59,493 nucleotides of DNA from Macrostomum lignano (taxonomy: Eukaryota), in NCBI GenBank assembly GCA_002269645.1, contig NIVC01004121.1, positions 1 through 59,493 on the forward strand, given 5' to 3'. The notes beneath the pieces were generated by a model. The model was not told the DNA's origin and did not search any database. It saw only the letters and a program-made list of their open reading frames with translations. This document shows, in pieces, positions 22,702-27,213 of the stretch (within the stretch, counting starts at the first letter, position 1; every line of letters starts with the position of its first letter). The position numbers and the translations under genes are program-made.

Positions 22702-25700
22702 ATGACTCAAAAACAGCAACTCATAATCCGCAACCTACAAGAAGTAGTAGGCCTAGACAGACTCAAAGCTAAAACAGCCAAACACGAGTTGAGCGTGTAC
22801 TGGGGCACGGCCACAACCGGTCGGCCTCATGTTGCCTATTTTGTACCGATGAGTAAGCTGGCCGATTACCTGCTAGCCGGGTGTCACGTGACCGTCCTGT
22901 TTGCCGACTTGCACGCCTACCTGGACAATATGAAAGCGCCTTGGTCGCTGCTTAATAAACGTACAAATTATTACGAAACTGTGATTAAAGGCATGCTAAA
23001 ATCGATTGGAGTACCGCTTGATCGATTGAAATTTGTTCGCGGCACAGATTTTGAGTTGGGAAAAGAGTACACCAGAGATGTCTATCGTATCACCGCTGAG
23101 GTCACGGTTCACGATGCTAAGAAGGCCGGCGCAGAGGTGGTTAAACAGGTAGCCAGTCCGTTGATTTCCGGCCTCCTTTATCCTTGTCTGCAGGCTCTTG
23201 ACGAGCAGTACCTTGGAGTTGATGCTCAATTTGGCGGCGTAGATCAAAGAAAAATATTCATGCTAGCTGAGAAGTATCTGGTTAATTTAGGCTACTCTAA
23301 ACGAATCCACCTGATGAATCCCATGATTCCCGGCCTGACTGGCGGTAAGATGTCCGCCTCTGAGGCCGATTCAAAGATTGACTTGCTAGACTCTGCCGAG
23401 TCTGTTAGCGCTAAAGTTGCCGGCGCTCAATGCTCTCCCGGAGCCGCCGAAGGCAACGGAGTTCTCAGCTTCCTACAGTACGTTGTCTTCCCGTTGCTAG
23501 GCGGCACCGATGGCCTAGCGATTGGTTCGTCGAAGAAACGTTACGCCGAATTCCAACAGGTGTCTGAAGATTTCGCGTCGGGTAGTTTAACTGCCGAAGA
23601 TTTGAAAGGCTGCGTAGCTGACAGTCTGAACCGGTTGCTGGGTCCCGTTAGGAAAGAATTCGAAGAATCTTCTGAGCTTCAACAGCTCCTGGTGGATGCC
23701 TATCCGAAGGATCAACCAGCTAAGGGCAGCAGCGGTGGAGATGCCGGCGATGTAGCCGACCGTCTGGCTGGAATTCAACTGGCCACCATCGACGCCAAAC
23801 TGATTGAATCGCTGAGTCGGTTTGCTACTCAGTTTGGTTCTCAAGATTCTGTGCCAGTCAAATCTGGTTCATCACCCAGGTTGCTATGGACAATTAGACC
23901 TAGCGGTCCGATGCACCTGGGACACCTGGTGCCATTGATTGGCGCCCTGTCTATGGCCAAGGCTGGCTGGAAGGTCACCTTGTTAGTGTCCGAGATGCAG
24001 GCTTTCTTAGATAGGAAGCGAGCTCCAATTGACTCACTGGAAGTTAGAGGTTCGACAGTTAAAGATGTGCTAAGTCGCTTGGCAACTGGTCTCCTAGGCG
24101 ACACAGCTGCCGCTGCCGTCACTGTGACTTCTGGCCTAGAAGAGTTGAGCTATAACAAAGACTACGTGCTGGATATGTATCGTCTGGTGTCTTTAGTTAC
24201 TGTTGACGAGGTGAGGAGCAGTATATATAAAATGCAACTGTCTTAAAATAGACAGACCGTAGAAAAAAAGGTTTCTTTGATTGTCACCTATCTACCTGTC
24301 AGTGCCTGTGTGTCTTTCTGTCTATCTATCTATCTATCTACCTGTCTATCTATCTATCTATCTATCTATCTATCTATCTATCCATCTATCTATCTATCTA
24401 TCTATCTATCTATCTATCTATTTATCTATCTATCTATCTATCTATTTATCTATCTATCTATTTATCTATCTATCTATCTATCTATCTATCTATCTATCTA
24501 TCTATCTATCTATCTATCTATCTATCTATCTATCTATCTATCTATCTATCTATCTATCTATCTATCTATCTATCTATCTATCTATCTATCTATCTATCTA
24601 TCTATCTATTTATCTATCTATCTATCTATGTATGTATCTATTTATCTATCTATTAAAGAAATTATTCAAGACGAAATAAAAGAAACAAAAACGATGAAAT
24701 GCCTGCACAAACAATATTATGAGCACACTCTACTCCGCCCCTTCGCCCAGGCAATGCAAGCCGGCTCTGGCGTCCTCTCTCACGGCGAGCACCCGCCACT
24801 GTCCCACCTGCTATGGCCCTGTCTGTCCGCTCTGGACGCCCACCACTGCCGGGCCTCCGTCCGCCTTTGCGGCCAAGACGAGTCCAGCTTGTCCGAGTTC
24901 TACTCTCTCGCTCTTAATCGTCTGGGCTACCCGGAAACTCCTAGCTATGCTCATGCTCAACTGCCAGGCCTCACTGGCCAGTCCAGCATGAGCTTGTCTG
25001 ATCCTGATAGCGCCATCTTAGCTTTGGAGTCGGCTGCCAGTTTGAAAAAGAAAGTAAAAAAAATGTTCTGCGAGCCTGGCAATGTTGACCGGTGCCCGCC
25101 GTTGGACTGCCTGCGGCTGCTGTTGCTGCCGTTTAAACGACTCAGTGGCTCAGAAGGTGACAGCATCCGGGTGTCTCGGTCTGCTGAACTCGGAGGCGAC
25201 CTGGTGTTTGCCAGCTTCGATGAGTTGAAGTCTGCGTTTGTTCATAAGGTGACAAATCTTTGCCGTCTGGTAGTGCTGTTAGATTCGTATAAGGCAGTTA
25301 GAAATGCAGGGAGAGGCAGTTAGAGACGCAGGGAGAGACAGTTAGAGATGCAGGGAGAGGCAATTAGAGACGCAGAGAGAGGCAGTTAGAAATGCAGGGA
25401 GAGGCAGTTAGAAATGTAGGGAGAGGCTGTTAGAGACGCAGGGAGAGGCAGTTAGAAATGCAGGGAGAGGCTGTTAGAGACGCATGGAGAGGCAGTTGGA
25501 GACCAGGGAGAGGCAGTTAGAAATGCAGGGAGAGGCAGTTAGAGACGCAGGGAGAGACAGTTAGAGATGCAGGGAGAGGCAATTAGAGACGCAGAGAGAG
25601 GCAGTTAGAAATGCAGGGAGAGGCAGTTAGAAATGCAGGTAGAGGCAGTTAGAGATACAGGGAGAGGCTGTTAGAGACGCAGAGAGGCAGTTAGAGATGC

Positions 25701-27213
25701 TGGGAGAGGCAGTTAGAGATGCAGGGTGAGGCAGTTAGAGATGCAGGGTGAGGCAGTTAGAGATGCAGGGTGAGGCAGTTAGAGATGCAGGGTGAGGCTG
25801 TTAGAGACGCATGGAGAGGCAGTTAGAAATGCAGGGAGAGGCTCTTAGAGATGCAGGGAGAGGCTCTTAGAGACGCAGGGAGAGGCAGTTAGAGACGCAG
25901 GGAGAGGCAGTTAGAGACGCAGGGAGAGGCAGTTAGAGATACAGGGAGAGGCTGTTCGAGACGCAGGAAGAGCCAGTTGGATTTGGTTAATCTTGTAAAT
26001 TTCTACATTTTCAACCCCTTGCCTTCACAACTGCCAGTCTCTGCACCCCGGCGACCTGAAAGCCCACGTGGAGTCTGGCCTGCTGGAGATGCAGAACCGT
26101 CTGCGGGAGTTGATTGGCCCCGAGCTGACTAAAAAACTGGACGGCGCATTTGCTGCGCCTGATAAGAGTGAGTTTATATTTTTCAACTATTAAATACCTA
26201 TTTGTTTATGGCTACTGTCAGTAGTAGCTTTTCTAGCTTTGGAGATCGAAAAATCTGGATTTTTTGGTATGCCATTGAATTGGCCCCAAAATTGAGCGTC
26301 AGATAGCGCCAAAATAAATGTCAGAAGTGAGTGTCAGATAGCGCCAAAAATGAGTTTCAGTTGGCGCCAAAAATGAGTCAGTTGGCGCCAAAAATGAGTT
26401 TTAGTTGGCGCCTAAAGTAAGTGTCAGATAGCGCCGAAAATAGGTGTCAGATAGCGCCAAAAGTGTGAGCGCCAAATAGCGTCAAAAATGAGTGTCAGAT
26501 GGTGCCGAAAATAGATGTCAGATAGCGCCGAAAATAGGTGTCAGATAGCGCCAAAATTGAATGTCAGATAGCGCCAAAAGTAAATGTCAGATAGCGCCAA
26601 AACCGAGTGTCAGATAGCGCCAAAACTTCTGTCGTCAAATCCATCCAAACCTTCAACCCCCTCCAACCTCTCCCTCGCTGCAGAGTCAGCCGGTGCAGCA
26701 GCAGACGAGCTGAACCCTCACCGTCTGGACATCCGGGTCGGCCGCATCCTGGACGTCTCGGTCCACCCAGACGCCGACCAGCTGTACGTTGAGTCGGTGG
26801 ATCTGGGCGAGGACCGGCCTCGGACTGTAGTGTCGGGCCTGGTGAAGTACCTGCCGGCTGACCAGTTGCGCAATCAGCTGTTCCTGTTCCTCTGCAATTT
26901 GAAGCCGGCTAAAATGCGCGGCATCGAGTCCAGCGCCATGCTTCTGTGCGCCAGCGCCACCGACGGCGCCACTGTTGAGCCGCTGAACCCGCCGGAAGGT
27001 TCGAATCCGGGCGACCGAGTCGGATTCGAAGGAGTTGCCGAGATCCCATTGGGCCCGGACAAGGAGCTCAATCCCAAGAAGAAAGTCTGGGAGAAGATTG
27101 CCGAACATTTGCGCGTTAACGAAGACGGCATTGCGGTTTGGCGCCAATTTGAAATGCGAACGGAACGGGGCATTGTGGTGGCGCCAAGTCTCAGCTCAGC
27201 GCCGGTGAAATAA
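22702..27213 (+). CDS. YARS1: Cytosolic tyrosyl-tRNA synthetase, double-length (TyrRS-TyrRS-EMAPII-like tRNA-binding domain), about 888 aa
   Basis: Exons 22702-24210, 24751-25248, 26038-26167 and 26684-27213 (phases 0, 0, 1; 2667 nt). Unit 1: [69 protein letters not shown]. Unit 2 is a second aligned copy ending HPGDLK. C-terminus LDIRVGRI...GLVKY...[20 protein letters not shown] is EMAPII-like. Confidence 0.95.
24318..24650. repeat. (TCTA)n microsatellite, TyrRS intron 1
   Basis: Direct. Confidence 0.98.
25305..25975. repeat. 22-bp minisatellite (GCAGGGAGAGGCAGTTAGAGAC), TyrRS intron 2
   Basis: Direct. Confidence 0.95.
26290..26625. repeat. About 22-bp degenerate minisatellite (GTGTCAGATAGCGCCAAAAATGA), TyrRS intron 3
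   Basis: Direct. Confidence 0.9.

Follow-up and report, generated by a model that had tools for sequence, protein, structure and literature searches.

A double-length tyrosyl-tRNA synthetase with complementary units and a C-terminal EMAPII-like domain in the flatworm Macrostomum lignano

The locus and its gene model

The stretch of DNA analysed here, called the window in what follows, is contig NIVC01004121.1 of the Macrostomum lignano assembly GCA_002269645.1, taken at its full length of 59,493 nucleotides. Between positions 22702 and 27213 of its + strand lies a gene for tyrosyl-tRNA synthetase (TyrRS), which has four exons in our own gene model. The spliced coding sequence of 2667 nt encodes a chain of 888 aa (calculated mass 96.2 kDa), in which a first TyrRS unit, a linker of 48 aa, a second TyrRS unit and an EMAPII-like tRNA-binding domain follow one another. 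All three introns have GT..AG borders, with donors of the GTGAG or GTGAC type. The parts of the gene, all on the + strand, are the following:

22702..24210, +, exon 1: aa 1-503, with the ATG, unit 1 complete, the linker and unit 2 up to its residue 120; donor GTGAGG
24211..24750, +, intron 1: 540 bp, mostly a (TCTA)85 microsatellite at 24313-24653
24751..25248, +, exon 2: aa 504-669
25249..26037, +, intron 2: 789 bp, mostly a 22-bp tandem array of 31 units at 25292-25978
26038..26167, +, exon 3: aa 670-712 and base 1 of codon 713
26168..26683, +, intron 3: 516 bp, mostly a 23-bp tandem array of 13 units at 26328-26625
26684..27213, +, exon 4: the remainder of codon 713 to aa 888, with the TAA stop at 27211-27213
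22702..23706, +, TyrRS unit 1: aa 1-335, ending with DAYP at nt 23706
23707..23850, +, inter-unit linker: aa 336-383, rich in Gly, Ser, Asp and Ala
23851..26694, +, TyrRS unit 2: aa 384-716, spanning exons 1-4 with all three introns inside it
26731..27210, +, EMAPII-like domain: Pfam tRNA_bind OB fold at aa 729-823 (nt 26731-27015), then a C-terminal subdomain to aa 888

The 503 codons of exon 1 form one open frame, with no stop, which ends at VTVDE (aa 503). As it runs unbroken through unit 1, the linker and the start of unit 2, the fusion of the two units is independent of any splice prediction. A sequence-only reading of the window had already proposed this double chain, and the motifs on which it relied (DAYP at nt 23706/aa 335, several paired motifs of the two units, and IPGLTG/LPGLTG) are all found where it had placed them.

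Two synthetase units in one chain

Pfam recognizes tRNA-synt_1b (PF00579) in two stretches of the protein, with E = 2e-80 and 270 bits for a cut-off of 21, and tRNA_bind (PF01588) at aa 729-823 with E = 8e-28. Aligned with each other, units 1 and 2 share 30% identity across 306 residues (E = 3e-31), their mutual identity lying at about 28-30%; and a local hidden Markov model (HMM) of canonical animal mini-TyrRS extends nearly end to end over both, scoring 509 bits in unit 1 and 174 in unit 2. Pfam, self-alignment and HMM agree on a double TyrRS in a single chain followed by an EMAPII-like domain, as the sequence-only reading had it. By their profile both units are members of the archaeal/eukaryotic class I TyrRS of the PF00579 type, and the polypeptide, with its two catalytic and anticodon-binding units, has the composition that defines the double-length pseudo-dimeric TyrRS.

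The canonical animal enzyme, YARS1, is a homodimer whose chain consists of one mini-TyrRS and EMAPII. Unit 1 of Macrostomum is 63-65% identical to vertebrate YARS1, its EMAPII-like domain can be aligned with the EMAPII of canonical animal TyrRS, and both this domain and the anticodon motifs of unit 2 are of the animal type. The order, synthetase first and EMAPII fused at the C-terminus, is also alike. The Macrostomum protein differs from YARS1 in carrying two synthetase units per chain in place of one: an additional, catalytically degenerate unit stands between the active unit and EMAPII, and the functions of one subunit are split over two.

Complementary loss of motifs

Both units were aligned to canonical TyrRS and the residues numbered as in the human and zebrafish enzymes. 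Among the functional residues compared, Y39, Y166, Q170, D173 and Q188 are those which, from the human and M. jannaschii structures, we take to form the tyrosine pocket. The anticodon is read by residues of the HPGDLK motif in the complexes of archaeal and eukaryotic TyrRS with tRNA. The two units compare as follows:

Y39: kept in unit 1; L in unit 2
HVAY: kept in unit 1; HLGH in unit 2
LHAYLDNMK: kept in unit 1; MQAFLDRKR in unit 2
Y166, Q170 and D173: kept in unit 1; W, S and D in unit 2
Q188: kept in unit 1; E in unit 2
KMSSS: kept in unit 1 as KMSAS; SMSLS in unit 2 (Lys to Ser)
FCEPGN: lost in unit 1 (QCSPGA); kept in unit 2, aa 609-614
R..E.GGD loop: lost in unit 1; kept in unit 2 (ELGGD, aa 649-653)
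HPGDLK: lost in unit 1 (LTAEDLK); kept in unit 2, aa 672-677

Unit 1 thus has the class I signature and a full tyrosine pocket: Y33 (human Y39), HVAY at aa 43-46, an intact motif at aa 158-167, GGVDQRK at aa 178-184 and KMSAS at aa 216-220. Unit 2 lacks this signature and pocket, and the comparison of motifs places the features of the active site in one unit and those of anticodon recognition in the other. The same division appears when canonical and double-length TyrRS are aligned together with MAFFT: the catalytic half of the canonical enzyme falls on unit 1 and its anticodon half on unit 2, and the invariant columns of this alignment split likewise. Besides, unit 1 has no ELR motif, the corresponding position being occupied by NKR.

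Predicted structure and proposed working

The AlphaFold2 model of the chain has a pLDDT of 86 and a pTM of 0.74. Low confidence is confined to the two linkers. That between the units is predicted to be disordered except for a helix leading into unit 2, residues 343-370 and 383-392 falling below a pLDDT of 50; the EMAPII-like domain exceeds 90. Taken singly, the units superpose on human mini-TyrRS with a TM-score of 0.94. The fit of both together to the pseudo-dimer chains of Leishmania donovani and L. major extends over about 760 columns and gives TM-scores of 0.80-0.83 when normalised to the target; the match to 5USF_B reaches 0.83 over 761 columns covering both units. The model thus predicts, in silico, that units 1 and 2 pack against each other as the two subunits of a dimer do.

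TyrRS is an obligate homodimer. Each tRNA that it binds spans both subunits, one of them holding the acceptor end and the other the anticodon (PMC8319005); from this, the two units of the Macrostomum chain are expected to form a pseudo-dimer within the molecule, with exactly one site for productive tRNA binding. The enzymes of Leishmania major, L. donovani (PDB 3P0H/3P0J/5USF) and T. brucei offer the closest model, since they too carry two units in one chain and form an intramolecular pseudo-dimer. In Leishmania and T. brucei catalysis belongs to the N-terminal unit, whose anticodon domain is defective, the C-terminal unit is without KMSKS and keeps anticodon recognition, and activity requires both units (PMC8319005); the motif pattern of Macrostomum is alike. 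The Leishmania enzyme differs from that of the flatworm by lacking an EMAPII-like domain, the EMAPII-like proteins of Leishmania being encoded by separate genes (PMC3532385), and by deriving from a separate duplication event. By analogy, the Macrostomum protein would work like the Leishmania enzyme without being its relative at the level of the duplication.

The course of events that we propose begins at or before the base of the sampled flatworms, when the mini-TyrRS coding unit (catalytic and anticodon-binding parts) would have been duplicated internally, in tandem. Both subunits of the homodimer would thereby have been joined in a single chain, ahead of the EMAPII-like domain peculiar to animals, after which the two halves would have lost complementary functions. 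Unit 1, having kept the tyrosine pocket and the ATP motifs, would activate and transfer tyrosine, its anticodon recognition being gone. Unit 2 would have kept its fold, its position at the dimer interface and its anticodon motifs (FCEPGN, GGD loop and HPGDLK), its catalytic residues having been replaced. A single productive tRNA site would then be formed by the active site of unit 1 and the anticodon domain of unit 2, with the help of the C-terminal EMAPII domain.

A second copy and the public records

The spliced protein is identical at every residue to UniProt A0A1I8ILR9 ("Tyrosine--tRNA ligase", M. lignano, 888 aa). Besides, a 99%-identical copy exists on another contig of GCA_002269645.1, NIVC01000095.1, where it is annotated as PAA91082.1 (BOX15_Mlig021276g1, 892 aa). 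Mapping of the exons shows that its four exons are collinear with those of the window gene, without gaps, and have the same splice dinucleotides; the junction of exon 1 is the same in A0A1I8ILR9 and PAA91082.1. The introns measure 691, 419 and 584 bp in this second locus versus 540, 789 and 516 bp in the window, a difference due to the tandem repeats that fill them. The annotation of GCA_002269645.1 was made solely from RNA-seq and transcriptome assemblies, with open reading frames (ORFs) called by TransDecoder (PMC5730564), so that for the PAA91082.1 copy an mRNA joining the four exons into one ORF is supported. The same architecture is seen, in other species, in unbroken ORFs of about 900 aa on contigs of transcript size (about 3 kb).

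The two Macrostomum copies also allow the constraint on each part of the chain to be compared. Unit 1 has 11 synonymous changes for a single nonsynonymous one, and the EMAPII domain 5 for none; unit 2 has 12 synonymous and 8 nonsynonymous changes, and the linker 1 and 2 respectively. Unit 2 is therefore more relaxed than unit 1 yet still constrained, its ratio being well under the nonsynonymous excess of about 3:1 that the absence of constraint would give. It must be said that the flatworm sequence is already public and correctly named, and that as genome annotation goes the locus is otherwise ordinary.

Occurrence in other animals

A first homology search returned full-length double TyrRS from many malacostracan crustaceans, with 100% coverage and 43-46% identity (genera Procambarus, Penaeus, Palaemon, Homarus, Cherax, Scylla, Hyalella and Idotea), and double TyrRS of 700-725 aa without EMAPII from the spider mites Tetranychus urticae and Panonychus citri. 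A profile built from eleven double-length proteins was then searched against 1.84 billion representative proteins, the names being looked up afterwards. It added three flatworms, Taenia crassiceps (KAL5106853.1, 984 aa), Schistosoma japonicum (KAH8857980.1, 970 aa) and Heterobilharzia americana; the nematodes Heligmosomoides polygyrus (712 aa) and Aphelenchoides besseyi (698 aa); the pseudoscorpion Cordylochernes scorpioides; and several transcriptome or metagenome proteins. Automatic pipelines have thus annotated the double-length architecture in no fewer than four phyla or classes of animals.

The complementary loss of motifs goes with the architecture. The proteins of T. crassiceps, S. japonicum and H. 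americana have both the domain order and the motif division of Macrostomum. Their second unit is much more degenerate in Taenia and Schistosoma, with large low-complexity insertions in the catalytic domain and 50+50 bits against the 174 of Macrostomum, which makes the latter the less eroded state. The units of crustaceans and of the pseudoscorpion degenerate in a complementary way too, and those of crustaceans form clades of their own in the trees; nematode and mite proteins have two units with complementary degeneration like the flatworm protein and, unlike it, are without EMAPII. The plant enzyme At1g28350 also has two units in its chain and differs from Macrostomum by the catalytic motifs reported for both halves in the passage that PMC9437257 devotes to it.

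Several observations on these proteins deserve mention for themselves. In the spider mites T. urticae, P. citri and their relatives the order is reversed, the degenerate, anticodon-competent unit coming first and the catalytic unit second; this reversal, together with the lack of EMAPII, is most simply read as the mark of an independent origin. Longer isoforms from Penaeus, Palaemon, Idotea and Hyalella have an extra N-terminal domain of about 85 aa (...SY..GY...D...RWLNHI...), absent from the flatworm protein. In the Logan run ERR3675767, an intronless gene at 1001-3322 encodes a double TyrRS of 773 aa without EMAPII, in a compact eukaryotic genome where topoisomerase and homeodomain genes are closely spaced beside it; its unit 2 is the best BLAST match to unit 2 of Macrostomum (35% identity, 201 bits), and both contain HLGH. 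On the other hand we discounted as a double-length example the "tyrosine--tRNA ligase 2" of Gigantopelta aegis (1151 aa), made of three near-identical TyrRS repeats of which one is truncated: as judged from its repeats, it looks less like a diverged pseudo-dimer than like an artefact of assembly or annotation, or a tandem duplication of very recent date.

As for the literature, double-length TyrRS of trypanosomatids were reportedly described by Larson 2011, Käser 2018 and Barros-Álvarez 2017, to go by the papers that cite them. That of Arabidopsis (At1g28350) is attributed to Duchêne 2005 in the passages of PMC9437257 and PMC7564348 that mention it. A single sentence of PMC7564348 states that double-length TyrRS are "also found in nematodes"; for those of flatworms, crustaceans and mites no description was found in the literature searched, Larson 2011 lying outside it. 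The sequence-only reading, which knew of no animal report, was thus too sweeping as regards nematodes, and holds for flatworms and crustaceans, on which no paper was found. Its own refuting condition, a prior annotation of the architecture across animals, applies in part: the exact protein stands in UniProt and GenBank, and double-length TyrRS are annotated in other flatworms, nematodes, crustaceans, a pseudoscorpion and mites.

Origin of the duplication

Among solved structures, human YARS1 is the best match of both units, which are thus of the opisthokont/animal type that had been proposed for them. Unit 1 scores 445 bits with human YARS1, 371 with the yeast enzyme and 82 with the double-length Leishmania enzyme (3P0H/5USF); for unit 2 the values are 162, 145 and 37 bits. 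The comparison covered the human, yeast and Leishmania enzymes. As for both units the human and yeast scores are far above those of Leishmania, the duplication is independent of the trypanosomatid one; common descent with the trypanosomatid double-length clade finds no support here, and as regards the duplication the resemblance is one of analogy, not of homology.

Independence of the trypanosomatids does not mean that the event is peculiar to the lineage of Macrostomum, as the sequence-only reading could suggest. In the trees of the separate units (neighbour-joining with 200 bootstraps, the degenerate units lying on long branches), unit 1 and unit 2 of Macrostomum were sisters in none of the 200 bootstraps. 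Its unit 2 forms one clade with the second units of Taenia and the schistosomes (Schistosoma, Heterobilharzia), with a bootstrap value of 89.5%, so that among flatworms the units group by unit and not by species. Moreover the second units of flatworms share the signature W[ST]I.P.G..HLGH..PL at the position of a canonical motif, and their first units share an insertion "AE[GQ]GNG" where the canonical enzyme has EPGNxxxNG. The clade and the unit signatures indicate a duplication older than the split between Macrostomorpha and Neodermata. With the same domain order, the same signatures and the same grouping by unit in these long-branched neighbour-joining trees, the double TyrRS of Taenia, Schistosoma and Heterobilharzia are likely orthologues of the Macrostomum gene.

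Beyond flatworms, deeper groupings did not resist a change of the aligned region. A common origin with crustaceans was considered, since unit 1 of Macrostomum grouped with theirs at 66% in the first neighbour-joining tree; this grouping disappeared from the tree limited to the catalytic domain, and was probably driven by a parallel decay of the anticodon domain. In the same way a clade of flatworm and nematode first units, at 94% in the full-length tree, was not recovered with the catalytic domain only. In one further lineage both units are nearly intact, and they group together in the trees. This lineage and the reversed order of the spider mites (in which the losses are likewise complementary, with the units swapped) imply that at least some of the duplications are independent. 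Whether the fusion of the homodimer and the ensuing complementary loss were repeated independently in flatworms, nematodes, malacostracans, spider mites, the pseudoscorpion and at least one lineage of very recent duplication is a question on which we stand evenly divided.

Alternative explanations

The architecture, the motif pattern, the transcript-based annotation of the 99%-identical copy and the predicted pseudo-dimer fold are established by this analysis. On this ground we consider it quite probable that the gene encodes the cytoplasmic TyrRS of Macrostomum, duplicated, fused and degenerated in a complementary way into an intramolecular pseudo-dimer with one tRNA site. Several points nevertheless weigh against this interpretation. 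A single active site, a monomeric state, tRNA binding across the units and a housekeeping role are what we infer: for an active unit 1, an inactive unit 2 and a monomer we rely on the sequence and a predicted model, and for the housekeeping role on how well unit 1 is conserved and on the name "cytoplasmic" given to the orthologues in Schistosoma and Taenia. Unit 2 retains D173 and a perfect class-I HLGH tetrapeptide, so that it may bind some nucleotide or ligand. The substitution counts between the two Macrostomum copies are small. Finally, the word-indexed searches were uninformative. That made with unit 1 for a single-unit YARS1 returned only vertebrate and other canonical TyrRS and missed even the known double proteins of Macrostomum and crustaceans, so that it is no evidence of absence; that made with unit 2 gave 8 weak matches, without its own self-match, because unit 2 has too few exact 5-mers in common with anything.

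This weakness of the search is of consequence for the idea that the gene is a neofunctionalised paralogue, serving in tRNA binding, signalling or as a scaffold, with a canonical single-unit YARS1 charging tRNA elsewhere in the genome: a second cytoplasmic TyrRS could have escaped it. Moonlighting functions of animal TyrRS and its EMAPII domain are known and would fit such a role, as would the high divergence of unit 2, only 33-34% identical to canonical enzymes. We think it unlikely all the same. Unit 1 has every catalytic and pocket residue, with an identity to vertebrate YARS1 typical of an essential orthologue; unit 1 and EMAPII show almost no nonsynonymous change between the copies; in Schistosoma and Taenia it is the orthologue that bears the annotation of cytoplasmic TyrRS; and no second TyrRS cluster of Macrostomum or other flatworms appeared in the searches made, one of them uninformative. 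If the gene is indeed the charging enzyme, one may still ask whether both of its units are active, each chain then having two active sites, as is suggested for the double-length TyrRS of Arabidopsis, whose halves are both reported with HIGH and KMSK motifs in the part of PMC9437257 that concerns them. Unit 2 of Macrostomum has a full-length Rossmann fold, predicted with high confidence, and the HLGH and D173 mentioned above would fit with some activity. It has, however, exchanged Y39, Y166, Q170 and Q188 for L, W, S and E, and the lysine of KMSSS for serine; in Taenia and Schistosoma it is still more degenerate at these positions and bears large insertions; and unit 1 is without the anticodon motifs that a second productive tRNA site would require. 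Two active sites per chain are thus decidedly improbable.

An artefact of annotation or assembly, in which two tandem TyrRS genes, or a gene and a decaying pseudogene, would have been read as one, deserves a word because such models exist (the Gigantopelta entry is plainly artefactual, or else very recent) and because the M. lignano assemblies are rich in repeats, which fill every intron of this gene. Here it is very unlikely, to the point of hardly being credible: a single stop-free exon leads from unit 1 through the linker and on for 120 residues into unit 2; two independent assemblies agree on the structure, and the GenBank model derives from transcripts; contigs of about 3 kb, the size of a transcript, carry uninterrupted double ORFs of 900 aa in other species; different classes of flatworms have the architecture in common; and unit 2 shows motif-specific conservation and purifying selection, not the decay of a pseudogene.

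Surroundings of the gene

At the 5' side of the gene one further feature was noted:

22684..22689, +, TTACAG acceptor: 12 nt 5' of the TyrRS ATG

PAA91082.1, the transcript-derived protein, begins just 3' of this acceptor. Trans-splicing is frequent in M. lignano (PMC5730564), and the acceptor is probably a site of spliced-leader trans-splicing, or else a cis-acceptor for read-through from the upstream gene. The latter occupies 9934-12553 of the window, on the + strand, with exons at about 9934-10566, 11687-11857 and 12392-12553; its product contains a motif of the GSGKGYLG type that resembles a methyltransferase signature. A model of 1154 aa, UniProt A0A1I8IVH2, joins it to the acceptor just before the TyrRS ATG, a splicing that suggests either a polycistronic unit resolved by spliced-leader trans-splicing or a mis-fused model.

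Both sides of the gene are bordered by repeats. Upstream, a satellite of 6.6 kb (15983-22616) is made of about 275 copies of the 24-bp unit ATTCCAACCCACAGAATCTCCCAC, with 82% matches, and ends about 85 bp before the TyrRS ATG; the extreme GC skew (-0.85) at 16-20 kb is due to it, as are long spurious ORFs in several frames. Directly 3' of the TyrRS stop lie two other tandem arrays, at 27309-27988 (24 bp, 31 units) and 28590-29000 (28 bp, 14 units), which yield long repetitive ORFs on both strands.

Significance

The single-chain pseudo-dimeric TyrRS has so far been taken for a curiosity of trypanosomatids (and plants), and its peculiarity for a feature that could make it a selective drug target. 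The locus described here is an independently derived animal version that also bears EMAPII. Certainly its mechanism could be foreseen from the precedents, and its relevance lies with specialists of aminoacyl-tRNA synthetases and with work on helminth drug targets. Its likely orthologues show that tapeworms and blood flukes have a double-length enzyme that their vertebrate hosts do not. If the fusion and the complementary loss were repeated independently among animals, all parasitic flatworms (Schistosoma, Taenia) would have a TyrRS structurally unlike that of the host, and Macrostomum would represent the least eroded state among flatworms.

In this direction, M. lignano, for which transgenesis and RNA interference are established, is a tractable free-living model for testing the passage from a homodimer to an obligate asymmetric single chain, with a series of increasing erosion from Macrostomum to Taenia and Schistosoma. 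A more interesting lead than the locus itself is the recurrent conversion of the homodimer into a pseudo-dimer in animals: if the fusion did occur repeatedly, these cases would add to those of trypanosomatids and plants and make TyrRS a textbook case of how homodimers turn, repeatedly and in a ratchet-like manner, into obligate pseudo-dimers.

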